Source: Macrostomum lignano (taxonomy: Eukaryota). From it: DNA of 64,000 bases. Location of the stretch: assembly GCA_002269645.1 (NCBI GenBank), contig NIVC01000001.1:2356001-2420000 (forward strand), written 5' to 3'. This document shows positions 9,154 to 43,800 of this stretch, in pieces. Each line of letters opens with the position of its first letter. Position 1 is the stretch's first letter. Position numbers and translations under genes: made by a program. The notes under the pieces were generated by a model. That model saw nothing but the letters and a program-made list of their open reading frames with translations. It was not told the DNA's origin and made no database searches.

Positions 9154-11400
9154 TCAGGTCAACCGAGCGTCGCAGTGCCGACATGTGGTGTGCCGGCAGG
9201 TGCCGCGCTGCGGCTGCAGCCGTCGCCTGCTCTCCACTGACGTTGCCGATTGGTTGGCGGCAGCGGCGGCGGCAGCAACGGCGGCGGTGGTGGCGGCGGC
9301 CGCGGGGGCAGCGTCGACCGCAACTCCGGAGCTGCCGGCCCCGCCGCTGACGCCACAGCATGTTGTCGGCGACAACGAAGACGATGTTGGTGAAGAGGCG
9401 GCCGCAGCCGCCAGCACAGTGTTCAAGCAGCGACGCCTCGCTCGGCTGTCGGCCAGAAACAGCAGCAGAGCGTCAAGCGTCTCCAGCAGCGTCACCAGAG
9501 ATGCTCCCAGAAGCAGACCGAGTGCGCCGCCGCAGTCGGCCAGGAAGGCGCTGAGCGGGTAGAGCCAGACCTCCATCAACTGGCGTTCGGTCAGGGCCGA
9601 CGGTCGAATCTCCAGCATGCCGGTGGACTCCTGCAGCACCTGGTAGGCGTAGATGGTGAACTCTGTATCCTTAAGCCGTCGCAGGTAGGCCTGAACGTGC
9701 AGGCTGGCGTTCCGTCGACGAGCCTCTGGTTCGAGGACTTCGCGTTCGAATTGGCGCACATTCTGCGCGATGTAGGCCGCTTGCATGGTGTCCGTGGAGC
9801 GAAACCAGGGCCCAGAGTCCACCTGAGCGGAGTACCTGGTCGACACTGGGTCTGGCTGCACGCTACCAGCCTTAGTCTCCTGCGCCGATATCAGCTTGGG
9901 AAACCGCTTCACGAAGCAGTCAACAGACCGTTTGAACCCGGCGTAGTTGTACGTATCCTCGATCCACCTGCTGCGCTGGTCGCTGTCGCTAATGTACAGG
10001 TAGCGGCCCATGTAGTGCACTCGGTCGGGGTCGAACAGCAGCAGGGCTGGGTCGCGAATCCCGATGCAGGCGGGCGCAGCGTTGGCTCCCTCGGCCACCG
10101 GCAGCGGCAAGGCGTCGCTGACGCAGTCGCATTCGGCCATCAGGTCGGCTTGTCGCTGGGCCAGCACACGGTCGGACAGCTGGCTGGCAAAGGAGCGGCA
10201 CCAGCGACGCTGCCCGCCGAAGCAGTACTCAACTGAGGTGAGCATCCGGTTGAGCGACAGCTGCACGGAGGCGTCGTCTTCCAGACTGGCTCGCCAGACG
10301 CGGCGCATCCGGACTCGCATGGAGGTGACGCGGCCGCTGGCCACGTGAGCGACTTGATTGAAGGTCGGCCAGGTCATAGGCGGGTGCAGCGTCGCTGTGA
10401 AGCTGTGCCGGTGAGTCATGCTGGTCTGGGGATCGGCCGTGAGCAGCCAGTCCCGAGGAGTCAGGGTGTAAAACTGCAGCACAAGGCCAGGCGTGTCGTG
10501 GTCCAGGTAGGAGGAATACACTGTCCGCCTGGGCGGGTGGTAGGTCAGACAGGAGCCGTAGGATGGATGAAAGAATATTGAGAAATTGCTCATTGAGCAA
10601 AGTTGGCCTTGGTAGCGGCAGTAAGCGACTAGGTCTAGCGGCGTGAGCACGGCACTCGAGTTAAGATAATAACGAAACACGCTTGGCAGAGCCAGTTTTG
10701 AGGTGTACTCTCGCTGGGCCTGGGGAAGGTGCTGGTAGGACAGGTTATTGTACAGCACGTAGCTCCAGAAGGCCCGGGCTGTGGTCAGGGCGATGTCGAC
10801 CCCCAAACTGCGATTGCTGCCGTTCAAGTTGTCGGGCTTGCCGACATCTCGGCGATAAAATGGGCTGGGCGGGCAGACGGTCACGTCAGGGAACACGAAC
10901 GGCGTCTCGCGGCCCTGCGCCAGCACCGTGTAGCCGCTGTTGAACAGAGCGGCCAGCCGCCACAAGTGAAATCCGCTGACCGCCGTGCAGACAACAAATG
11001 CGATGAGCCACAGGGACTTCACTGGCGGCGATCGGTGCAGGAATTTCAACGCGAACGGCGTCAGCACCAGACGGTGGTAGGTGGCCGTGACGCGCTTTGT
11101 AGCGGCCGCGGCGGCGGAAGCTGTCGCGCCGGCTCTGGGCTGATAGCGGTGGTGGTGATTGCTGCTTCTATGAACTTGGTGGTTTTGATGCAGCTGCTGC
11201 TGCTGGTGAGCTGCCGGCATCAGCAGGGAACCGGTCGGCGGAACTCCTCCGCCACCGACTGACTGCAAAGGCGGCGGAGGCGGCGGCGGCGGCGGCGGCA
11301 GTGGAGGAGCTCCGTACGAGGAGGCTGGTGGCTTGCGTGACACTGACGCGAACGTGCCTTCGTCCGAGTCTTCAAAATCAAAGCTGTACCGTCCGAGCAT
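9154..11400 (-). CDS. Degenerin/ENaC/ASIC-family ion channel subunit, single exon, 748 aa
   Basis: ATG-to-stop ORF with TM1 (SLWLIAFVVC), post-TM1 motif FPDVTVCP, YCRYQGQLC and YGSCLTY motifs, and TM2 with selectivity filter FLADCGGALGLLLGASLVTLLE. Poly-Pro/Gln/His N-terminus; GC3-rich codons. Confidence 0.93.
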   Translation of the reverse strand: MLGRYSFDFEDSDEGTFASVSRKPPASSYGAPPLPPPPPPPPPPLQSVGGGGVPPTGSLLMPAAHQQQQLHQNHQVHRSSNHHHRYQPRAGATASAAAAATKRVTATYHRLVLTPFALKFLHRSPPVKSLWLIAFVVCTAVSGFHLWRLAALFNSGYTVLAQGRETPFVFPDVTVCPPSPFYRRDVGKPDNLNGSNRSLGVDIALTTARAFWSYVLYNNLSYQHLPQAQREYTSKLALPSVFRYYLNSSAVLTPLDLVAYCRYQGQLCSMSNFSIFFHPSYGSCLTYHPPRRTVYSSYLDHDTPGLVLQFYTLTPRDWLLTADPQTSMTHRHSFTATLHPPMTWPTFNQVAHVASGRVTSMRVRMRRVWRASLEDDASVQLSLNRMLTSVEYCFGGQRRWCRSFASQLSDRVLAQRQADLMAECDCVSDALPLPVAEGANAAPACIGIRDPALLLFDPDRVHYMGRYLYISDSDQRSRWIEDTYNYAGFKRSVDCFVKRFPKLISAQETKAGSVQPDPVSTRYSAQVDSGPWFRSTDTMQAAYIAQNVRQFEREVLEPEARRRNASLHVQAYLRRLKDTEFTIYAYQVLQESTGMLEIRPSALTERQLMEVWLYPLSAFLADCGGALGLLLGASLVTLLETLDALLLFLADSRARRRCLNTVLAAAAASSPTSSSLSPTTCCGVSGGAGSSGVAVDAAPAAAATTAAVAAAAAAANQSATSVESRRRLQPQRGTCRHTTCRHCDARLT

Positions 11401-17968: not shown

Positions 17969-18652
17969 CCTTGTGAGTTTTCTTCAAGAGACAACAAACA
18001 ATTCCGTTTCTGGAATATGGACTTTATCTGATGGACCAGCTATAAATACGAGTTAGCAATTATGTTTGTAGCAGACAGCCAATTTAAACCATAGACAGAG
18101 TGAAAGATTTCATTTTTATTTTTATTTGCTGTCAAAAGATTTTTTAAAATCATCAATTCTTTGAGTTAAGCTACAAATCACCTTAACTGCCAAAAATGAC
18201 ATCTTTACTAGACTGAAAAAACACAACTATAGGACTCAATTGCGACTCCAACTGCAGCCAAGCCAAATGCGTCCTTTGCTTCCAGCTACGAGCACTAGGT
18301 GAGCCCGCCTTTGTACACAGTGTTCCAAGTGCTTTCACTGTCTCATAGAGGGTGTTTGTTGATTCCACTGTCTCATTGAAGGCGATTGCTGCACCCAATA
18401 TGTCGCATGAAGGTTTTCGCTACCACCGGTGTCTCTTTAACTTTAAGAGCCCGTCTTAAGACTACCTCAACCGCCCGTTGAAACTGCAGGCATCAGGCTT
18501 CTGGTTACTGTCCGAATCGTGGGTCAACTGTCGCATATGGTTTGAAAATTCGACAATCGCAGAACAACTCAAAGCATGATTGCCTAGTCTCACTGTCCAT
18601 CGACTGTCGACGCGACAATCACAGTCAGCCTCAGCCAGCCGACTTTGAGACA

Positions 18653-27960: not shown

Positions 27961-28290
27961 CTCGTACTTCCTGTAGAGATACATTATACAATATTTTTAA
28001 GGGGTCTTCATGACATTTTGACAAAAGTCAGGATTCCATGGCATCTTTATATGGCAAATAAAAAGCCTACTGCTTAATTATATAAATATATAAATATATA
28101 TTTCAATATTACACTTACTAGATTGAGAATTACTATATATACAAGTGTAGGTAGCATAATTTTTGTTTTACTCAAGGTTGCTATTAAATTAATGCTGTTC
28201 CAAAAGGTATTGTTTAAATAAGTTATTGCATAGAGCTTTTAATTTCCAGCTAATTGATTTAAAGTGTCACAACATTTTACTGTTTGAGCC

Positions 28291-31200
28291 ATGAGCAACT
28301 CAAACCAAAAAACACCCAATTCAAGCCAGGCGTAAGTTCTTTTTTATATTTGTTTTAAATACATTGCTATAATTTCAATACTATTTGTTACAATATGTTA
28401 TACTATTTTATAGACCAATTAAACTTCCCTTCAACAATGATGGGTCTTTCATGGAAATGTTCAAGAAGATGAAGCAGCAGCAGCAACAACAGGGTCAGCA
28501 GTCGTCAGGCTCGCAGCAGGACGTCAAACCGCCAGTTGGTTTGGTTGCTAAGCAACCGGGTGAAGCTGTGAAACGATCAGCTGGTGCTATGGGCGACCTG
28601 GCTACTGTGTGAGTTGATATCTCTCGAATCATCAATTGCTAACCATCCCTATGATATAAATATCCCATATTGATAATCCCCAATATCCCCTATTGATTAT
28701 CCCCAATCTCCCCTTTTTATTATCCCCAATACTCCTTGTTGATAATCCCCAATATTCCCTATTGATTATCCCCAATTTCCCCTATTGATTTCCCCAGCGT
28801 CAGCTGTTTATCATCCCCCATATCAGTGGTTAAGAATCCGGAGTATGAGCAGCACCTATCGCACAAAGCCATCACATTGGCGCCCCCAATCTGCAGTGTT
28901 AAATCCAGCGCTAAGCCGAAGCTGGAGGAGATTCACGATTCGATCCCTCCGCCCGAGGACCCGATCGCCATCATGAACATCGAGAATCTGGCCTCGCAGA
29001 TCGCGCCGCTGGCCCCCGACGAAGAAGTCACCGCGCTGCGCTGCTTTAAATCCGAAGATTGCTACTCGTAAGTAGTGCTTACCGGTTTTCTATGTACAAA
29101 TTAAATTATAGTCTTTTATAAAAAAATTCCTTATGCAAACGCAGATTCTTGCGCGACCAGAGCAGTCAAGAGTGTCGCTATTTCTATTATCGGCTGGGCG
29201 AAATCCGCTTGGAACAGAGTCAGGAGGCTGAGGCGGCTGGTAAGTGCAAATACGAGTATATAATGAGAATTAAAAATACAATTAAATTTATTAACATCAA
29301 TAAAACTAATTGCAAATTGAGTAAGTCGACTTAGTCGCGGTTAGTGCTGGTGTACAAGGGGTCCAGGGATCCCTCATAGTTACTAAATAATTTGAAACTG
29401 AATGACTAAAATGCTAGGAAATGATTGTCGCACATTGCTACTACTAGTAGGCTAGTTAAAATTCTATGATAAGAAAATGATCATCGCGCATTGCTACTAC
29501 TAGTAGGCTAGTTAAAATTCTATGATAAGAAAATGATTATCGCGCATTGCTACTACTAGTAGGCTAGTTAAAATTCTATGATAAGAAAATGATTATCGCG
29601 CATTGCTACTACTAGTAGGCTAGTTAAAATTCTATGATAAGAAAATGATTATCGCGCATTGCTACTACTAGTAGGCTAGTTAAAATTCTATGATAAGAAA
29701 ATGATTATCTCACATTGCTACTACTAGTAGGCTAGTTAAAATTCTATGATAAGAAAATGATTATCGCGCATTGCTACTACTAGTAGGCTAGTTAAAATTC
29801 TATGATAAGAAAATGATTATCGCACATTGCTAACTACTAGTAGTCTGAAACGCAAGTAATGCGCGCATAATTTCAGACGCAAAGCGACCCCGGTCCGATC
29901 AACCGTCCTCCTCGGCGGGGACCGGTGCTGCCGGAGGTGCTGGCGCGGCCGACCTGTTCGATCCGTACTCTTCTAAGAACATCCGGGCTGCTAAGAAGTT
30001 CACCGGCGGCTTCCATCTGACTGAGGATCAGGCTAAACAGATCGCCTATCAACAGGAGCTCAATGCTATTCAGGTTCGCTAGCGCCTATTAAATTTTGTT
30101 ATTAGTAAGAGCAAATTTAATGCTGTATATTATACGCCTAATACTGCAGGAATTCATACTGGCCCAGAAGAAGCTGAAGATCAAAGAGAAGGAAGTGATC
30201 GCCGCCAGGGGCAAATACGAATACGACTCGGACGAGGAGGAGGCCTCAGCCGGGGCGCCAACTTGGGAGCACAAGCTGCGCCAGCAGGAGATGGAGGCCA
30301 CTAAGAATTGGGCCTTCAAGCTTACCGAGATGGGCAAGGGCCGGCATCATCTCGGCGATTTTATGGACCCGCAGGAGCTGACCAAGTTTATGGAGCAGTA
30401 CCGTCAGCTGAAGGTGATAACCTGGGTTCCGCTTACTGATTTCTTGGCTCATACTTTACACCTACCCTACATTGCCTAAACCATGCACTCATCTCAAATC
30501 GGAACTAACCAGTAATGGCACCCAAATTGCTCCAAAATCGTCCTTTGTCTAACTTTATCACCCGCACTGAGAACCGGCCCTGAACCACACTGAGAATCAG
30601 CCCTGAACCACACTGAGAATCGGCCCTGATACACACTGAGAACCGGCCCCTAAACCACTCTGAGAACCGACCCCTAAACCACTCTGAGAACCGACCCCTA
30701 ACCCAGACTGAGAATCGGCCCTGAACCACACTGAGAATCGGCCCTGAACCACACTGAGAACCGGCCCCTAAACCACACTGAGAACCGGCCCTGAACCACA
30801 CTGAGAACCGGCCCTGAACCAGACTGAGAATCGGCCCTGATACACACTGAGAATCGGCCCTGAACCACACTGAGAACCGGCCCTGAACCACACTGAGAAC
30901 CGGCCCTGATGCACACTGAGAATCGGCCCTGAACCACACTGAGAATCGGCCCTGAACCACACTGAGAACCGGCCCTGATGCACATTGAGAATCGGCCCTG
31001 AACCACACTGAGAATCGGCCCTGACGACACAGAATCGGCCCTGAACCACACTAAGAACCGAAATTGAACCACACTGAGAATCGCCCCGAACCACACTGAG
31101 AATCGGCCCTGAACCACACTGAGAACCGGCCCTGAACCACACTAAGAATCGGCCCAGAACCACACTGAGAATCGGCCCTGAACCACACTGAGAATCGGCC

Positions 31201-31620
31201 CTGAACCACACTAAGAATCGCCCCCGAACCACACTGAGAACTGGCCCTGAACCACACTGAGAACCGGCCCTTAAATGCCCCTTACTCGATGCCAACCGAA
31301 CCCAGGAGGACGGCGGCGAGATGTCTTCGGCAGACTACGCGGAGTTCAAGCTGACCTGCGAGAACGTGGGCTTCAAAATGCTGGAGAAGATGGGCTGGAA
31401 GGAGGGCGAAGGCCTGGGCCAGGCGGGTCAGGGCATCACGGCGCCGGTGGGCCAGCAGGGCGTCAACCAGACAGGCGCCGGCCTCGGCCTCATGTCCAGC
31501 AGCGCGATTGCCGAGCTCACTAAAGATGACGACGAATACGAGGCCTATAGGAAGCGAATGATGCTGGCTTATCGGTTCAGGCCTAATCCGCTAAATAATC
31601 CTCGGCGGAATTACTATTAA
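28291..31620 (+). CDS. SUGP1: SURP and G-patch domain protein 1 (splicing factor 4), join(28291..28331,28414..28608,28798..29067,29145..29239,29877..30073,30150..30413,31306..31620), 458 aa
   Basis: All introns are GT-AG with consistent phases (total 1377 nt). N-terminal [14 protein letters not shown]; SURP motif [19 protein letters not shown]; YDSDEE...TWEHKLR...GRHHLGDF; G-patch [19 protein letters not shown]; invariant tail [23 protein letters not shown]. Confidence 0.95.
28665..28795. repeat. Repeat of about 23 bp (GATAATCCCCAATATCCCCTATT) in SUGP1 intron 2
   Basis: 5-6 degenerate units. Confidence 0.8.
29420..29840. repeat. 56-bp minisatellite in SUGP1 intron 4, about 7.5 copies
   Basis: Period of 56 measured (29461 to 29517). 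Confidence 0.95.
30565..31271 (+). repeat. 23-bp minisatellite GAGAATCGGCCCTGAACCACACT in SUGP1 intron 6
   Basis: Direct periodicity; reverse complement of the array at 32885-33520. Confidence 0.95.
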
Positions 31621-31789
31621 GCCGGCTTATTTGTTTTGATTTTCTACTCCTGCTTCAGTTTGGGTGGTAATATTTTGCTCTATTAATGAGATGGTTTTGA
31701 GACCCGGGCTTAGCAATTGCTACGATTATTTTGCTACGTGCGCCTGTCACGTAAAATTCAGAAATCTCTTATCTTTAAAGCTCTGAAAC

Positions 31790-32275
31790 TCAACAACCAC
31801 CAAAATTCACAACCACCAAACTTCACGACCCCAAAATTCACAACCCACTAACTTCACAGCCCCAAACTTCACGACCCCAAACTCCACAACCCCCAAACTT
31901 CACGACCCCAAAATTCACGACCCCAAACTCCACAACCCCCAAACTTCACGACCCCAAAATTCACGACCCCAAACTTCACGACCCTAAAATTCACAACCCC
32001 CAAACTTCACAACCCCCAAACTTCACAACCCCCAAACTTCACAACCCCCAAACTTCACAACCCCCTAACTTTACAACCCCCTAACTTTACAACCCCTAAC
32101 TTTACAACCCCAAACTTCACAGCCCCCAAACTTCACAGCCCCACAAACTTCACGACCCCAAACTTAACAACGCCCAAACTTCACAGCCCCCCAAACGTCA
32201 CGACCCCAAACTTTACAGCCCCCAAACTTCACAGCCCCCAAACTTCACGACCCCAAACTTAACAACGCCCCCAAC
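31790..32275. repeat. 15-16-bp C-rich minisatellite (AACCCCCAAACTTCAC)n
   Basis: Direct periodicity. Confidence 0.9.
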
Positions 32276-32884
32276 TTTATTATTTTGAAATCGTAGCGAA
32301 GCCATCATTAAAAAAGGCAATAACCCAGAGATTTTGGGGTAGCGAAATAATAGTGCAATTGAATTCAGTACATTGACTGTCGGCCTGCTCTCTGATGTCT
32401 TGCTGGCCTAGTAATTAGTTTATCTGCTCTATTGTAACTTTGACTGGGCGGTCCAGTTAATTCTCTTGTGAGGTTTCGCATAAATTATGCTCACATTGTT
32501 CAACTGTTAAATGATTTCTTGATACTGCAGTGATCCTGGCATTTTGCATTTTGTCAGGCAAACCACTCAACCCCAATCTCCCCTTGTCATTAATATCAGT
32601 TTTCATTTATCCCTATTATATTGCCTGTTGTTTATTGTGTATGTAAATAGACTTCTTGTCTTTGTCTCATCAAGTTATACCCTGGTTAACTGTCACTCGT
32701 CTGTGTATGCTGTTAGGTACATAATATGTCAAATTTGAACTAAAATATTATATATTATTCATGTTTCTTTTCGTTTTACTGCCAAATGTGCTTTTGTTAA
32801 TGCTTTTTTGTGCTAATTTTAGCACTGAATTTTAACATTTACGGGTGGTTTGTTGCAATCTTTAATATGGTTATAAGACCTAAT

Positions 32885-33520
32885 CAGGGCCGGTTCTCAG
32901 TGTGTATCAGGGCCGGTTCTCAGAGTGGTTCAGGGCCAGTTCTCAGTGTGTATCAGGGCCGATTCTAAGTGTGGTTCAGGGCCGGTTCTCAGTGTGTATC
33001 AGGGCCGGTTCTCAGAGTGGTTCAGGGCCGATTATCAGTGTGGTTCAGGGCTGATTCTCAGTGTGGTTCAGGGCCGATTCTCAGTGTGGTTCAGGGCCGG
33101 TTCTCAGTGTGGTTCAGGGCTGATTATCAGTGTGGTTCAGGGCCGGTTCTCAGTGTGTATCAGGGCCGATTCTCAGTGTGGTTCAGGGCCGATTCTCAGT
33201 GTGGTTCAGGGCCGGTTCTCAGTGTCGTTCAGGGCTGATTCTCAGTGTGGTTCAGGGCCGGTTCTCAGTGTGGTTCAGGGCCGATTCTCAGTGTGGTTCA
33301 GGGCCGGTTCTCAGTGTGGTTCAGGGCTGATTCTCAGTGTGGTTCAGGGCCGGTTCTCAGTGTGGTTCAGGGCCGATTCTCAGTGTGGTTCAGGGCCGGT
33401 TCTCAGTGTGGTTCAGGGCTGATTCTCAGTGTGGTTCATTGCCGGTTCTCACCGTGGTTGAGGGCCGGTTCTCACTGGGGTTTCAGGGGCCGATTCTCAA
33501 TGTGGTTCAGGGCCAGTTCT
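32885..33520 (-). repeat. 23-bp minisatellite CAGGGCCGGTTCTCAGTGTGGTT, the same unit as SUGP1 intron 6 but inverted
   Basis: The unit is the reverse complement of the 30565-31271 unit. Confidence 0.95.
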
Positions 33521-33581
33521 TGGTGCGATTCAGCTGCTAATCCTGCGGTTATTAAACAATCTTCATCCGTTCTGTCTCCAG

Positions 33582-36500
33582 TTGCCCTTAAGTCGCTGCC
33601 TTCGATTTGGCCAGCAGCGCTTGGCGCTAGCTGCGCAAACGGCGCCACTTCCGCGCCAGCCTCGGCGCCTGCGGCACCAGCAGGACCCGGGCACCCTGCG
33701 CGCCCGGCTGATCCGCGCTGTCACGGAGCCGGTGGTGCCGCCCAAACCGGTCTCCGACACCGAGCGGCGCCTCCGCCTGGCCGAGTATCGTCGTCAGCAG
33801 CTGGAGAGCAGCGGCTACCTGGCCTTCCTTGTTGACGAATATCGACGGACTGTTCTGGACGCTGCCGACGGCAACATGCTGCTGCTGTTGGAAATGCTGC
33901 CAAACAGAATGGTGAGCTGCAGTCTGAGTCGTCCACAGTTGCTCAGAGATAGAATCAATTTTTTATCTCATGCTTCCATAGATAGATACCATTTTATCCC
34001 ATGCTCAGAGATAGATCCCATTTTCATCCCATGCTCCCAGAGATAGATCCTTTTTTTATCCCATGCTCAGAGATAGATCCCATTTTCATCCCATGCTCCC
34101 AGAGATAGATCCTTTTTTTATCCCATGCTCACAGAGATAGATCCTATTTTCATCCCATGCTCCCAGAGATAGATCCTTTTTTTTATCCCATGCTTACAGA
34201 AATAGATCCTATTTTCATCCCATGCTCCCAGAGATAGATCCCATTTTTATCTCATGCTTACAGAGATAGGTCCTATTTTTATCCCATGCTCACAGAGATA
34301 GATCCCATTTTCATCCCATGCTTATAGAGATAGATCCCATTTTTATCCCATGCTCAGAAAGATATATACCATTTTATCCCATGCTCAGAGAGATAGATAC
34401 CATTTTATCCCATGCTCAGAGAGATAGATACCATTTTATCCCATGCTCAGAGAGATAGATCCCTTTTTTATCCCATGCTCACAGAGATAGATCCCATTTT
34501 TATCCCATGCTCACAGAGATAGATCCCATTTTTATCCCATGCTCACAGAGATAGATCCCATTTTTATCCCATGCTCAGAGAGATAGATCCCATTTTTATC
34601 CCATGCTCACAGAGATAGATCCCATTTTTATCCCATGCTCACAGAGATAGATCCCATTTTTATCCCATGCTCACAGAGATCTTACTGTAAGCATCCCCTC
34701 AGCAACAGCAGGCTCATCGGCCTCCCTACTCCCCACCCGCAGCTGCTGAGCTTTTCGTATCGCAACGCCCTGCACGGCATCGGCTACTCCATGCCGCGGC
34801 ACTACCGCTACACCAATCCGGTTGTCAGGCGAGCCGCCGCCGGCACCAAATGGCAGCCGCTGGCCGAGCTGTTCTTTGCCGACGGCCTGAGAACCGAGCT
34901 CGCGTTTGGACCGGCCGAACCGGCCGCCTGCAAATCTGCGCTGGCCATTGTGGACGCCTCGCCATACCTGTTACTGCTTGGCGGAGTGACTGAGAACAGG
35001 ATGCTCACTGCCGAGCAGGTCGGTTGAAGCAATTTCTATACTGCCTTCTGCTGTTTTTTAAGTACAAGTATTATTTGTTAATATCCAGGAGTTCAGGAAT
35101 CAATGTATAGCGGGATTAGCGAGAATAGGGAGAACATGGATTATCAGCAATGTGGAGAATATGGATTATCAGCAATGGGGAGAATATGGATTATCAGCAA
35201 TGGGGAGAATATGGATTATCAGCAATGGGGAGAATATGGATTATCAGCAATGGGGAGAATATGGATTATCAGCAATGGGGAGAATATGGATTATCAGCAA
35301 TGGGGAGAATATGGATTATCAGCAATGGGGAGAATATGGATTATCAGCAATGGGGAGAATATGGATTATCAGCAATGGGGAGAATATGGATTATCAGCAA
35401 TGGGGAGAATATGGATTATCAGCAATGGGGAGAATATGGATTATCAGCAATGGGGAGAATATGGATTATCAGCAATGGGGAGAATATGGATTATCAGCAA
35501 TGGGGAGAATATGGATTATCAGCAATGGGGAGAATATGGATTATCAGCAATGGGGAGAATATGGATTATCAGCAATGGGGAGAATATGGATTATCAGCAA
35601 TGGGGAGAATATGGATTATCAGCAATGGGGAGAATATGGATTATCAGCAATGGGGAGAATATGGATTATCAGCAATGGGGAGAATATGGATTATCAGCAA
35701 TGGGGAGAATATGGATTATCAGCAATGGGGAGAATATGGATTATCAGCAATGGGGAGAATATGGATTATCAGCAATGGGGAGAATATGGATTATCAGCAA
35801 TGGGGAGAATATGGATTATCAGCAAAGGGGAGAATATGGATTATCAGCAATGGGGAGAATATGGATTATCAGCAATGGGGAGAATATGGATTATCAGCAA
35901 TGGGGAGAATATGGATTATCAGCAATGGGGAGAATATGGATTATCAGCAATGGGGAGAATATGGATTATCAGCAATGGGGAGAATATGGATTATCAGCAA
36001 TGGGGAGAATATGGATTATCAGCAATGGGGAGAATATGGATTATCAGCAATGGGGAGAATATGGATTATCAGCAATGGGGAGAATATGGATTATCAGCAA
36101 TGGGGAGAATATGGATTATCAGCAATGGGGAGAATATGGATTATCAGCAATGGGGAGAATATGGATTATCAGCAATGGGGAGAATATGGATTATCAGCAA
36201 TGGGGAGAATATGGATTATCAGCAATGGGGAGAATATGGATTATCAGCAATGGGGAGAATATGGATTATCAGCAATGGGGAGAATATGGATTATCAGCAA
36301 TGGGGAGAATATGGATTATCAGCAATGGGGAGAATATGGATTATCAGCAATGGGGAGAATATGGATTATCAGCAATGGGGAGAATATGGATTATCAGCAA
36401 TGGGGAGAAAATGGATTATCAGCAATGGGGAGAATATGGATTATCAGCAATGGGGAGAATATGGATTATCAGCAATGGGAAGAATATGGATTATCAGCAA

Positions 36501-36776
36501 TGGGGAGAATATGGATTATCAGCAATGGGGAGAATATGGATTATCAGCAATGGGGAGAATATGGATTATCAGCAATGGGAAGAATATCCTCAAACTCCTC
36601 AGGTGCGCAGCTACGCCCAGCTGGTCGACTTGGATACGGCTCGGGCGCGCCTCATCGGCGCCCTAAACGCGCCGGCTGAATCGTTGGCCGGACTGCTTAG
36701 CCGGCCGGCCGAACAGCTGATTACCCTGTTGGACAATCGACACAGTCAGCTGGGCGGCGACGGCGGCAGCGGTTGA
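33582..36776 (+). CDS. MRPL10: Mitochondrial ribosomal protein uL10m, join(33582..33911,34743..35018,36603..36776); no in-gene initiator ATG found
   Basis: All exons are phase 0. RLIRAVTEPVVPPKP (recalled human QKLMAVTEYIPPKP); PYLLLLGGVTENRMLT (PFLPLLGGCIDDTILS); YAQLVDLDTARARLIGAL...PAEQLITLLD (YSKLPSLPLVQGELVGGL...PLQLTTLLD). Arg/Leu-rich presequence-like N-terminus. Confidence 0.9.
33960..34680. repeat. 32-33-bp minisatellite TATCCCATGCTCACAGAGATAGATCCCATTTT in MRPL10 intron 1
   Basis: Direct periodicity. Confidence 0.95.
35135..36588. repeat. Highly homogeneous 25-bp minisatellite ATGGATTATCAGCAATGGGGAGAAT in MRPL10 intron 2, about 58 copies
   Basis: Direct periodicity with only about 4 variant units; explains the 504-557 aa ORFs. 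Confidence 0.98.
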
Positions 36777-37658: not shown

Positions 37659-38129
37659 CTAGTCATACGGATAAGCGGACACAAACGATGCAGAACCGCA
37701 GCGCTCCCTCTTGTCGCCTTCGCAATGCAGATGGCAGCGCTCTTCGTTGGTGTAGCCGGCACTCTTCACCTTGTAGCCGCAAAAGCAGAGCTTCTGCTTT
37801 AGTAGCACCTGTCTAGAAATGATGCTGCTTTTTAAGCATAACTTCCGGCAATTTTCCGACGTTAGGTTAGTCACGGGGAATATTTTTGCGCCATTGGCGT
37901 ATTGGTTTGTTGATTCGATTGTGTAACAGCCTGGCAGGTCGGCTCCGCCTTGACAAAGAGCAGAATGAACTAGTGCGAAAGTAACACATTTGAATTTTAA
38001 ATATTAAAGTAGACATACTATTCAGTACTTGTACTTACTAGTTTTGCAACCTTGAGCTAAGGTCGCTAGAAAAGCCCACGAAAGCAACCAGCAAGCGATG
38101 GCGATATATGCCTGCTGAAGGGTCCTCAT
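37659..38129 (-). CDS. Small secreted single-WSC-domain protein, complement(join(37659..37948,38039..38129)), 126 aa
   Basis: Exon 1 encodes the signal peptide MRTLQQAYIAIACWLLSWAFLATLAQG and ends at a GTAAGT donor (phase 1). Exon 2 has WSC cysteine spacing GCY...LTSENCRKLC...CFCG...CHLHCEGDKRERCGS. Confidence 0.88.
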
Positions 38130-38699
38130 TTTCGTAGTTGACGAGATTAGATATGCATGTTTACTTAACTTATTTTACAAGGAAGTTACTTTATCCATAA
38201 TATTATTTATGAAGCAAAAGTTCGATATTTTGCCCCATAGACCATCATTAAGTAACGAAACTATTGTTAGTCTTTATTTCTTAATAATTATTGAAATCGT
38301 TTTTTTCTCGTTAAAAATGGTCTGTTTTCTTAATTTTAGGCATAACTCAGTCATTAAATTAAAAACTTTGTTATACCAAACAAGAAGTAAGAATTTGCAT
38401 ATGTTGTTTTCTTAGAAACTCTGGTTGTAGTCGTGGCAGGCGCTGGATCTAGCTGGCTTAGTTTGTGGCTTTTTGTGCTGCTGAGGCCGAGGAAGCATTT
38501 CACGAGCTATTAGCTAAAATCTTTATAAGCTTAAGATTTAGCTTGAAGCTTCATAAATAAGCTTGCGATTTCACATGCCCAAGATTTCAGATTACATTGA
38601 GAGTTTTTTTCACAAACACGAAACTGACAACTGGTGGTGGTACTTTATCAGTTCGTTTGTGAATGATGTCATGCCCATGGCCATGAATGACTATGTATT

Positions 38700-40480: not shown

Positions 40481-40890
40481 AGTCACTGTTCAATCCAAGG
40501 CGCCGACATGGCGACATGCTTCGATGCCAGCACGATCGACGATTCCTGTTCTGTGGTCGGCGCCGCTCAGCCATGCAAGAGCAGAGTATAAAATTAAGTG
40601 AAGAAAACCGAGGGACAGTTTAGCTTCACAACAGAGGCCCTGATTGTCTATTTTTTGCTCTCCACCATAGAGTCAAGAACGCAGATTTTATCTGTCTTTG
40701 ACTGACTTTGTCTATAGGCTGAGTGAATCTGGGGTTAGAATTGTCTATGGCCGCTCTGCAGCCAAGTGGGTTTTTTTTTCATCGTGCTTTGTATTTCAGG
40801 CGGAGCTGAAGTGGTTTTAACTAAGACTAATAAACTTTCAGCAAATCTGCCTGTAATAAACAATATATTCCAGCAAAAACGGACCGGACT

Positions 40891-43800
40891 ATGGAAGAAT
40901 CACTGGAAGCAATCAACTTACAAATTCGAAAGTACAGTAAAAAGCTGCGACAGATCGAACGACTGGTCTGTTCACCACGGGCCTTGAATGAAGAGGAGCA
41001 GTCCAAGGTAACTCAATATAGATGCAAGTATTGGCCACTTGAAGTTTCTGAAATCAAATTGAACTATATAATTTTGCTATTACTCTACATTTAATCCTGT
41101 AGGTCTCTAAGAAGACTGCCCTGCAAGCGAGTCTGCTGCACTACATGCAACTCTTGAAACGGTACGTACCTTTCAGATCCTTCTCGGGTTTGGTCAGCAC
41201 TATTTTCTAGATTCTAAAAATGCTGGGGCACCGCCACTCTCCCAGATCCTGAGTTGCTAGGCCGCTGTTATTTCTTACATTCTCTGCTTCTGGGTCACCT
41301 CCCACAGCCAGATATTCTTAGGTATTGGGCTTAGGTATTTCGCTTTGCTGCCTTGCAGCCATCAGCCCAGCAGCAGCAGCAGCAGCAGCAGTCCGCAATC
41401 CGGCAATGAACAGCCGTTAAGCGAGGCTTCAGCTTTGCCCGCTGCCGTCACCGCGACAGCAGAGCGTTCGGAAGCAATAAGCGACTCGCAACAACCGCCG
41501 GCGAAACGAGTCGCTGTTGGTTGCTCAAATTTGCCTGAAGAATCATTGAGCAGCCAATCAGATCAGCTGTCTATCGAGTCTCTGCAAGGTTCTGCCGCCC
41601 AATCAATCGAGTCTGTAGAGGAACTACAGCAACCAGCCAGCCAATCAGCGCCATCGGTAGAAAAGCCACAGCAATCAGCCAGCCAATCAGCGCCGCCGTT
41701 GGAAAAGCAGCAGAAATCAACCAGCCAATCAGCGCCGTCGGTTCAAAAGCCACAAAAATCGACCAGCCAATCAGCGCAGTCGGCGCCTAAGCCCCGTTCT
41801 CTAGCCAGCTATTCAGTGTCCGAGCTGTCCAACGGTCATTCGGACATCATATTCTCGACTGACAGTAGCAAAAACCTGGCTGTCACCGCTGGACGGGACA
41901 CAAGCGTACAGGTGTACGAAATTGAAATTTCCGAAAGTGGACTAAGCTGCCAAGGTAGCAGCCGCCTGACCGGCCACGCCCAGGCGGTCAATGTAGCCCG
42001 TCTAGTGGACTGCTCGGACTGTCCGGCTCTGTCCGAGGCGCTCGGTGCGGCTTCAACAATTCTGTGCGTCACCGGCTCGGAAGATGCTACGGTTCGAATC
42101 TGGGAGTGCGAGTCGGGTGAGAGGCTGATTTGGCTGTGAAATCTTACTAGCTGTTTCAAGTCCAAATCAAAAAATATTGTTTGTTTAACTATCCCACACA
42201 CACAGATACTAGGATAACTAGGTGGGCCACTCAGGCATATATACTTAGCAAAACAGCTTTCTACTTTCAGTTCAATAGCAATGAAGAATACATAAGCTAT
42301 TTTATAAGAATAGAGGCAGCTGAGATGACTTTGATAAGTTTAAAAGCCAAGCTTGCAGACGTAAACAGCTTTGCTAATTGGTTCAGCCATAATGTACATT
42401 AGCCACTGCAATGTACATGGTAGATTTAAGCTGGAACAGCCAAGGAAGACAATAAAAATTGGATGGCGGGGCAATTGGTAGAGATTCTATGTGGAGTTTT
42501 AGGGTTTAAGCTTGAGGGTAAGAACCAATAAATAAGCCTTATCTTTAAAAATACATTAAATGCTTCAGTTTAACTTACTACTGAACTGAAAGTAGCTTAC
42601 ACGCAAATGTGTTGAGTGGCCTATCTAGTTATTCTATGAACTATCCTATTTAAATATTAATAATAACATTTTAAAAACAGTTCTTTCAAATAGGGAAATA
42701 ATTTTTTTCTAAATATTCTGGTTATACTACTCGACTTTCTGGTTAGTAGCCTGTTGCGCAGATTATAAGCAATCTTTTTGTTGAAAAAGAAATTTGATTT
42801 TTTAGCTTGAAGAAGCGCAATTAGAAAGTACTTTGTATAATAAAAACACAAATTGTACTTTTTATAGTTACTATTCGAATCATCTACTCTGCCTGTCACC
42901 CCAGGTCGTCAACTATTCGAGCACTACGTATTCGCTTCGGTCACAGCCTTGCAGGCGTTGAAGTCCAGTGGCACCCTGCTGCTGCTGACTGGCAGCTCCA
43001 GCGGCAAACTCGAACTGTGGGATCCGGCCGGACTGTGGGACCGGGGGCCGTGCCTGATGGCCGACCAGCTGTTCAACGGCAGGGTCACCGATCTGCAGGT
43101 CTACGATGGAGAGAGAGGCTGGGCGTCGCTGGTTAGTTTCCAACTTGGAATTGCAATGCAAAATTTAAACTTTATTGTCCGACACTCTCTAACTGAGATC
43201 CCACACTCTCTAACTGAGATCCCACACTCTCTAACTGAGATCCCACACTCTCTAACTGAGATCCCACACACTCTAACTGAGATCCCACACTCTCTAACTG
43301 AGATCCCACACTCTCTAACTGAGATCCTAGATTCTCTAACTGAGATCCCGGACTCTCTAATTGAGATCCCACACTCTCTAACTGAGATCCCACACTCTCT
43401 AACTGAGATCCTACACTCTCTAACTGAGATCCCACACTCTCTAACTGAGATCCCAAACTCTCTAACTGAGATCCCACACTCTCTAACTGAGATCCTACAC
43501 TCTCTAACTGAGATCCCACACTCTCTAACTGAGATCCCACACACTCTAACTGAGATCCCACACTCTCTAACTGAGATCCCACACTCTCTAACTGAGATCC
43601 CACACTCTCTAACTGAGATCCCACACTCTCTAACTGAGATCCCACACTCTCTAACTGAGATCCCACACTCTCTAACTGAGATCCCACACTCTCTAACTGA
43701 GATCCCAAACTCTCTAACTGAGATCCCAAACTCTCTAACTGAGATCCCAGACTCTAATTGAGATCCCAGACTCTCTAACTGAGATCCTAGATTCTCTAAC

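Follow-up and report, generated by a model that had tools for sequence, protein, structure and literature searches.

The window analysed here is a stretch of 64,000 nucleotides (nt) from the genome of Macrostomum lignano, a free-living flatworm (contig NIVC01000001.1 of assembly Mlig_3_7, GCA_002269645.1); coordinates are window positions, window position 1 being record position 2,356,001. On the plus strand, a SUGP1-like G-patch gene is followed, across a satellite-rich spacer, by three exons that encode the mitochondrial ribosomal protein uL10m (MRPL10), the first of which opens directly behind a splice acceptor and carries no start codon. The exons of the window are GC-rich (64–67% GC) and stand amid AT-rich or satellite-filled non-coding DNA; MRPL10 exon 1 has 66% GC, against 46% in the 60 nt on its 5′ side. 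Translation and enumeration of splice sites give a three-exon model with GT-AG borders and 259 codons, all of them open, so that adding only an AUG yields a product of 260 amino acids, (M)LPLSRCLRFGQQRLALAAQ, as had been proposed in an earlier reading of the letters alone (hereafter the sequence-only reading). Exon 1 specifies an N-terminus that resembles a presequence, together with the conserved block QPRRLRHQQDPGTLRARLIRAVTEPV. No gene is called at this locus in the GenBank annotation, which is weak and unspecific evidence because the neighbouring WD-repeat gene downstream was missed as well. Intron 2 consists, from 35124 to 36587, almost entirely of a satellite with a 25-nt unit (58.6 copies at 99% identity) that is open in the frame of exon 3 and creates a spurious open reading frame (ORF) of 557 amino acids (35103–36776); the homogeneity of this array suggests either very recent expansion or idealisation by the assembly.

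By homology, the protein encoded at 33582–36776 is securely uL10m/MRPL10, the name given to it in the sequence-only reading, and phmmer, exhaustive HMMER and profile searches agree on this assignment. Against PDB, phmmer matched bacterial uL10 and mammalian uL10m at E values of 1e-6 to 1e-4, with residues 133–248 of the query corresponding to residues 126–236 of the human protein. An exhaustive HMMER search of 1.84 billion representative proteins returned 297 matches, the best of which (E 5e-30 to 1e-22, 32–38% identity) include uL10m of Calicophoron, Echinococcus, Opisthorchis and Spirometra; Fasciola uL10m was matched at E 1e-18. A profile built from the query and ten homologues found mammalian uL10m at E 2e-27, placing profile position 80 on residue 80 of 9E9C_I. 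Human uL10m has 261 amino acids in PDB, in agreement with the sequence-only reading, and the 260 amino acids of the M. lignano protein with its donated Met fit the length class of mitochondrial uL10m (about 250–280) and not that of bacterial uL10 (about 165–180). Mammalian uL10m (PDB 3J7Y chain I and 9E9C chain I, 261–262 amino acids) is collinear with the M. lignano protein and has the same uL10 domain, although only about 25–30% of residues are identical; N-terminal offsets to the flatworm homologues stay within about 10 residues. A Pfam search with the protein gave no match, the Ribosomal_L10 model missing it, and a word-indexed homologue search with the 259-residue query also gave none, probably through saturation of its candidate list by low-complexity words. 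An MRPL10 homologue is present in the Gene Ontology list of expressed M. lignano genes in a published supplementary table.

The reading frame of MRPL10 remains open on the 5′ side of exon 1 for 40 codons, back to 33462, where it is closed by an in-frame TGA (33459–33461), and there is no ATG in this extension. The first in-frame ATG lies at 33876 and specifies residue 100, the donated Met being counted as residue 1; it is thus placed, as the sequence-only reading had it, in the interior of the conserved domain, where it aligns with an internal conserved Met of the homologues (ADGRMLL). Alignments with flatworm uL10m start at query residues 13–25, the block QPRRLRHQQDPGTLRARLIRAVTEPVVPP (residues 27–55) fits the flatworm consensus QP.R.R..PDPGTLEQRLFRAVT.PV, and coding sequence conserved among flatworms begins about 70 codons 5′ of the first genomic in-frame ATG. 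Since the conserved block precedes Met100 and Met100 is itself an internal Met of the homologues, translation would have to start upstream of any in-frame ATG that the genome provides. Ahead of the block there are 26 residues in the M. lignano protein and about 12–30 in the homologues, which argues that nothing substantial is missing from the N-terminus. The first 35 residues include 7 Arg and no Asp or Glu, a composition that fits a presequence; the helical hydrophobic moment of this segment is no better than that of shuffled versions (732/2000), in a test that is not discriminating.

The open codons ahead of exon 1 include CTG and TTG, and a capped mRNA that is not trans-spliced could in principle be translated from a non-AUG codon (CUG or UUG near 33534–33584) or from Met100. 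This is very improbable: the sole other ATG within 33462–33875, at 33500, is out of frame and opens an overlapping ORF of 112 codons that would capture scanning ribosomes, the 60 nt upstream of exon 1 are intron-like in composition, and a start at Met100 would delete both the presequence and the conserved N-terminal block. A bacterial-type interpretation of MRPL10 as an ORF starting at TTG was dropped as not applicable to a eukaryotic genome.

A start codon could also be supplied by a cis-spliced upstream exon, lying either in the spacer or within SUGP1, the latter giving a SUGP1-MRPL10 read-through fusion. The spacer (31621–33581) contains 13 ATGs and 11 phase-0 combinations of ATG and downstream GT, and SUGP1 and MRPL10 themselves employ some weak donors, GTTCGC and GTCGGT for example; moreover, the donors of SUGP1 exons 5 and 6 are in phase 0, so that splicing from them to 33582 would keep the frame, and the inverted satellite arrays described below could loop out the last SUGP1 exon. 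However, none of the 11 combinations ends in a GT[AG]AG donor, the majority fall either in satellite or no more than about 130 nt past the SUGP1 stop codon, in its probable 3′ untranslated region (UTR), and no ATG is open to the single consensus donor of the spacer (32468, GTGAGG). The N-terminus read from 33582 already equals those of the homologues in length, and a fusion would place the presequence internally, which seems biologically implausible. A cis-spliced source of the ATG is therefore unlikely, and the earlier statement that no convincing phase-0 ATG exon follows SUGP1 holds.

The acceptor in front of exon 1, ttctgtctCCAG / TTCTGTCTCCAG, ends at 33581, leaves the exon in phase 0 and has a branch-like CTAAT 40 nt on its 5′ side. 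It has the highest pyrimidine content (0.83) among all 18 AGs in 33380–33700, and its earlier description as a strong phase-0 acceptor was correct in position as well as in kind. Its last six nucleotides, CTCCAG (33576–33581), fit [T/C]TNCAG, the top motif of M. lignano trans-splice acceptors (PMC8629364); one other AG in the same interval matches the motif and would give an out-of-frame exon start at 33487, whereas the acceptor at 33581 is in phase 0. An alternative in-frame AG (33532–33533) follows a weaker pyrimidine tract (0.61) and is placed at the edge of a satellite.

M. lignano has a single spliced leader (SL), CGGTCTCTTACTGCGAAGACTCAATTTATTGCATG, which ends in ...TTGCATG; trans-splicing affects about 30% of its genes, and 15% belong to operons (PMC8629364). 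Every flatworm SL reported ends in an AUG that is able to initiate translation (PMC9851317, PMC12582326, PMC5832876), in agreement with what the sequence-only reading had taken as known, and the final ATG of the SL is treated as a start codon by Macrostomum annotators (PMC10468722). In Schistosoma mansoni, according to the work of Cheng et al. 2006 as it is summed up in the same three reports, 28% of trans-spliced mRNAs have the SL AUG in frame, and more than 40 cDNAs cannot do without it. Because MRPL10 has no genomic ATG, an in-frame acceptor that fits the motif and no credible cis exon, and because the SL ends in ATG, initiation at the SL AUG is favoured: as judged from genomic sequence, MRPL10 probably takes its start codon from the AUG of the trans-spliced leader, which is the best explanation of its 5′ end, and both trans-splicing at the 33581 acceptor and initiation at the SL AUG are inferred as probable.

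MRPL10 pre-mRNA would be trans-spliced at the acceptor ending at 33581, which would join the 35-nt SL (...TTATTGCAUG) straight to UUG CCC UUA, from 33582 onward. The predicted junction, ...UUGCAUG|UUGCCCUUA, is in frame by construction and would appear in the mRNA as ...TTATTGCATG|TTGCCCTTAAGT at NIVC01000001.1:2,389,582 (window 33582); reads of the joined mRNA would be expected as ...CAATTTATTGCATG|TTGCCCTTAAGTCGC at that position. The terminal AUG of the SL would be codon 1 of the 260-amino-acid protein MLPLSRCLRFGQ..., and the Arg-rich, acid-free N-terminus of this protein would act as a mitochondrial presequence. Unprocessed RNA would give no full-length protein, since it would offer ribosomes only the out-of-frame ATG at 33500 or Met100.

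Several observations weigh against this proposal. Further in-frame AGs (exon starts 33534, 33615 and 33618) leave the exact junction uncertain, which does not alter the conclusion because all three are also in frame. The SL AUG has a weak context, with U at both −3 and +4. None of the collections searched contained an MRPL10 protein or transcript of M. lignano, and the best match anywhere is 38% identical; exact look-ups of the product with Met, without Met and from the internal Met found nothing in the protein collection, and M. lignano uL10m has no entry in GenBank or UniProt. A metagenome scan with the first 29 nt of exon 1 gave no match, and the supplementary tables of published Macrostomum or flatworm studies contain no gene-level entry for Mlig013643, MRPL10 or SUGP1. 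Satellite arrays lie on both sides of exon 1, and it is in such DNA that assembly errors are most frequent; the highly duplicated genome of M. lignano DV1 means that this MRPL10 copy could be a non-functional duplicate.

In the last case, the locus would hold a decaying copy, or the assembly would have lost or miscalled the start (for instance, an ATG miscalled as TTG at 33582 or an exon hidden by repeat collapse), and a functional MRPL10 would lie elsewhere. BUSCO duplication reaches 79% in M. lignano (PMC10468722), satellites flank exon 1, and GenBank calls no gene here, as it also fails to do at the WD-repeat gene. Nevertheless, no stop interrupts the 259 codons, the exons have canonical splice sites, conserved residues are kept, no M. 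lignano uL10m with an ATG of its own or otherwise occurs among about 15 billion proteins, and two monogeneans have the same ATG-less architecture (see below); a duplicate or an assembly error is accordingly quite improbable. Initiation at the SL AUG thus remains the preferred account of MRPL10, and the features on which it draws are listed with their neighbours in Table 1.

Table 1. Positions of MRPL10, SUGP1 and the elements between and around them (window coordinates).
Feature	Position	Strand	Details
MRPL10 (uL10m) exon 1	33582–33911	+	330 nt, 110 codons, phase 0, no start codon; donor ATG|GTGAGC
MRPL10 exon 2	34743–35018	+	acceptor cag|CTG, donor CAG|gtcggt, frame kept; aligned to uL10 domain
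MRPL10 exon 3	36603–36776	+	acceptor tcag|GTG, stop TGA 36774–36776; aligned to uL10/uL10m C-terminal helix
Proposed SL trans-splice acceptor of MRPL10	33537–33581	+	CTAAT 33537–33541; polypyrimidine tract and acceptor ttcatccgttctgtctCCAG
Alternative in-frame AG	33532–33533	+	attcAG|CTG; SL AUG here would add 16 residues (MLLILRLLNNLHPFCLQ-LPLS...)
SUGP1-like G-patch gene (BOX15_Mlig013643g1)	28291–31620	+	ATG 28291–28293, stop TAA 31618–31620
SUGP1 coding exons	28291–28331, 28414–28608, 28897–29067, 29145–29239, 29877–30073, 30150–30413, 31306–31620	+	
Candidate SUGP1 trans-splice acceptor	28238–28249	+	tttaatttCCAG; 41 nt 5′ of ATG, fits [T/C]TNCAG; predicted use
23-nt satellite array in SUGP1 intron 6	30565–31271	+	30.7 copies (Tandem Repeats Finder, TRF); reverse complement of the array at 32884–33520
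Spacer (candidate intercistronic region or outron)	31621–33581	+	1,961 nt, 58% satellite
Spacer: 16/31-nt satellite	31786–32277		TRF
Spacer: unique AT-rich segment	32278–32883		606 nt, 35% GC
Spacer: 23-nt satellite	32884–33520		TRF

The SUGP1 product reconstructed from these exons equals GenBank BOX15_Mlig013643g1 at every residue, bar the choice of acceptor for exon 3, where two in-frame candidates lie 99 nt apart (28797/28798 and 28896/28897); the RNA-based GenBank model takes the downstream acceptor, and use of the upstream one would lengthen the product by 33 residues. The GenBank locus around this gene, 23,330 nt long (NIVC01000001.1:2,374,291-2,397,620), agrees with window positions 18291–41620 with 0 mismatches, which confirms the flatworm origin that the sequence-only reading had assumed. 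A G-patch domain (PF01585, E 2.5e-13) occupies residues 373–415. The closest named homologues are SUGP1/SF4 proteins of flatworms and vertebrates (38–61% identity). SURP (PF01805) was not found by Pfam at E<=0.01, nor is it among the precomputed domains of the M. lignano protein or of most flatworm homologues, and the gene is called SUGP1-like because its best matches are named SUGP1/SF4 without a detected SURP domain. An SL AUG joined at the candidate SUGP1 acceptor would open an upstream ORF (uORF) of 15 codons (28250–28294), the UGA of which overlaps the SUGP1 AUG (AUGA).

The two 23-nt satellite arrays are inverted with respect to each other, with arms of up to 259 nt and 94% complementarity, and their unit occurs nowhere else in the window. 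Between them lie the last SUGP1 exon, its 3′ UTR and the first satellite of the spacer. If a precursor were read through both arrays, these could pair into a long double-stranded RNA stem and so place the donor of SUGP1 exon 6 near the MRPL10 acceptor.

The dependence of MRPL10 on trans-splicing had been put forward together with an operon, in which MRPL10 would be the downstream member of a two-gene, SL-resolved unit transcribed from the SUGP1 promoter through the 1.96-kilobase (kb) spacer. The half of this proposal that concerns the start codon is the better supported, through the acceptor, its motif and the missing cis ATG, and the operon half is weaker. Adjacent genes of M. lignano have been assigned to operons where they share a strand, are not separated by a gene of the opposite strand and stand at a repeat-adjusted distance of <1 kb, and repeats inflate operon spacers in this species, whose mode is about 100 nt (PMC8629364). 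SUGP1 and MRPL10 are on the same strand, no gene lies between them, and subtraction of 1,129 nt of tandem repeat leaves 832 nt, measured from the SUGP1 stop codon. The GenBank name Mlig013643g1 designates SUGP1 as gene 1 of its transcriptional unit and nothing more (naming scheme in PMC5730564), and a minus-strand gene at about 37.7–38.1 kb would end any operon after MRPL10. Against co-transcription stand the raw spacer of 1,961 nt, set beside a mode of about 100 nt, the unique AT-rich segment at 32278–32883, which could hold a promoter, the lack of AATAAA in the spacer, and the fact that most trans-spliced genes of M. lignano are monocistronic, about 60% lying outside operons (PMC8629364). 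ATTAAA occurs in the spacer at 32307 and 33551 only, about the number expected by chance in 1,961 nt; the latter (33551–33556) sits 25 nt 5′ of the acceptor AG of MRPL10, and if it is the poly(A) signal of SUGP1, cleavage and trans-splicing would be adjacent. A SUGP1-MRPL10 operon is plausible, with about even prospects, rather than established.

The same observations bear on a monocistronic MRPL10 that is trans-spliced and uses the SL AUG while being transcribed from its own promoter in the 606-nt non-repetitive segment, the RNA upstream of exon 1 being an ordinary outron. SUGP1 could be terminated by way of the ATTAAA at 32307, well short of MRPL10, and the share of trans-spliced genes outside operons and the usual spacer length are both as such an arrangement would have them. 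Conversely, the pair falls within the published operon rule once repeats are subtracted, flatworm polycistrons with spacers of several kb have been reported (PMC12582326), and MRPL10 lies 119–183 nt 3′ of another gene in Echinococcus and Cichlidogyrus, as would a gene that is habitually downstream in an operon. An independent promoter is a tentative possibility that falls a little short of an even chance; codon 1 of MRPL10 would be the SL AUG with either source of the transcript.

Trematode and cestode MRPL10 orthologues that were examined have an ATG of their own. A strong acceptor lies 11–47 nt 5′ of the genomic ATG in MRPL10 of Calicophoron (L005), Opisthorchis (L006), Echinococcus (L004) and a flatworm-like metagenome contig (L001), where an SL AUG would open only a short uORF. 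Two monogeneans differ. In Cichlidogyrus casuarinus (L007:2940-3010), the annotated Met falls inside the conserved block (...QVRGHRY-M-PRPGTLEQ), and the frame extends 54 nt back without an ATG to ttattttttggtatAG at L007:2945-2946; an SL AUG at this acceptor would give MRLFQIWATWGLQVRGHRYMPRPGTLEQ, restoring a presequence (MRLFQIWATWGLQVRGHRY...). In Protopolystoma xenopodis (L003:54-130), the annotated MRPL10 coding sequence starts at TTG, its frame is open backwards as far as a stop with no ATG, and two in-frame AGs follow a pyrimidine tract (L003:83/84 and 95/96), on a contig that starts only 110 nt upstream. An ATG-less 5′ end that opens with an acceptor thus appears to recur in MRPL10 of two monogeneans, as a lead and not a result, because monogenean SLs are uncharacterised in the literature examined.

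MRPL10 is found 119–183 nt 3′ of a same-strand Sec1-family gene in Echinococcus granulosus (L004:2881-3001) and Cichlidogyrus (L007:2817-3001). This pair is a candidate conserved neodermatan operon, in place of which M. lignano has SUGP1 upstream, and suggests that MRPL10 is habitually a downstream operon gene with a different partner in M. lignano. An SL-AUG uORF with a UGA overlapping the AUG of the gene (AUGA), as described for M. lignano SUGP1, is also seen in MRPL10 of Calicophoron (L005:2954-3005) and Opisthorchis (L006:2987-3005), which makes three of the six cases with both an acceptor and an own ATG, in a tiny sample with guessed acceptor positions; such overlaps hint at termination-reinitiation.

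In a broader evolutionary reading, reliance of uL10m on the SL AUG would be a trait that is old in flatworms or recurs among them; Cichlidogyrus and Protopolystoma would share it, whereas trematodes and cestodes, in which an own ATG follows the acceptor by a few nucleotides, would have lost it. Synthesis and mitochondrial import of uL10m, a core protein of the mitoribosomal stalk, would then be obligatorily gated by trans-splicing, and in M. lignano the inverted 23-nt arrays around the last SUGP1 exon could in addition shape the processing of a polycistronic precursor. This reading is doubtful. The monogenean cases suggest an origin that may go back further than a single species.

Initiation at an SL AUG has been known in flatworms since 2006, from S. 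mansoni, and the MRPL10 case extends rather than changes the understanding of this mechanism; its novelty had been overrated in the sequence-only reading (PMC9851317, PMC12582326, PMC5832876). In the S. mansoni ‘slORFs’, as PMC9851317 describes them, the leader likewise contributes codon 1, its AUG being spliced in phase onto an ORF without one. M. lignano differs in being a free-living member of the Macrostomorpha, in which the case is known from genomic sequence only, and in that the recipient is a mitochondrial ribosomal protein in which the donated Met would head a targeting presequence. Studies of SL trans-splicing and operons in M. lignano (PMC8629364, PMC5730564) concern the same genome, SL, acceptor motif, 1-kb rule and repeat-inflated spacers, whereas genes that depend on the SL AUG are not discussed there. 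A flatworm study from 2003, cited in PMC12582326, has a title according to which trans-splicing decides whether a mitochondrial targeting N-terminus is present; that title refers to alternative mRNAs and two isoforms, whereas MRPL10 would be expected to give a single full-length product, with trans-splicing obligatory.

If confirmed, MRPL10 would be a clean case of a gene that is conserved and essential and yet is beyond annotation by genomic sequence alone, and this in a model flatworm open to transgenesis. Genes dependent on the SL AUG will be missed by pipelines that require an ATG in the genome or that remove the final ATG when they trim off the SL. The availability of transgenesis in M. 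lignano makes an obligatory coupling of trans-splicing, translation initiation and mitochondrial targeting testable with reporters.

Elsewhere in the window, no SL RNA gene was found, and Rfam and tRNA scans of the window were empty. On the minus strand, a single-exon ORF of 748 amino acids (9154–11400), for which no exact sequence match was found in the protein collection, encodes an amiloride-sensitive sodium channel (ASC/DEG-ENaC) domain (Pfam E 9e-28). A small minus-strand gene (37660–38135), the start of which resembles a signal peptide (MRTLQQAYIAIACWLLSWAFLA...) and which has GTAAGT as a donor, lies between MRPL10 and the next plus-strand gene. The WD-repeat gene (40874–43200, plus strand) has its own ATG at 40892, 18 nt past the acceptor aatatattCCAG.

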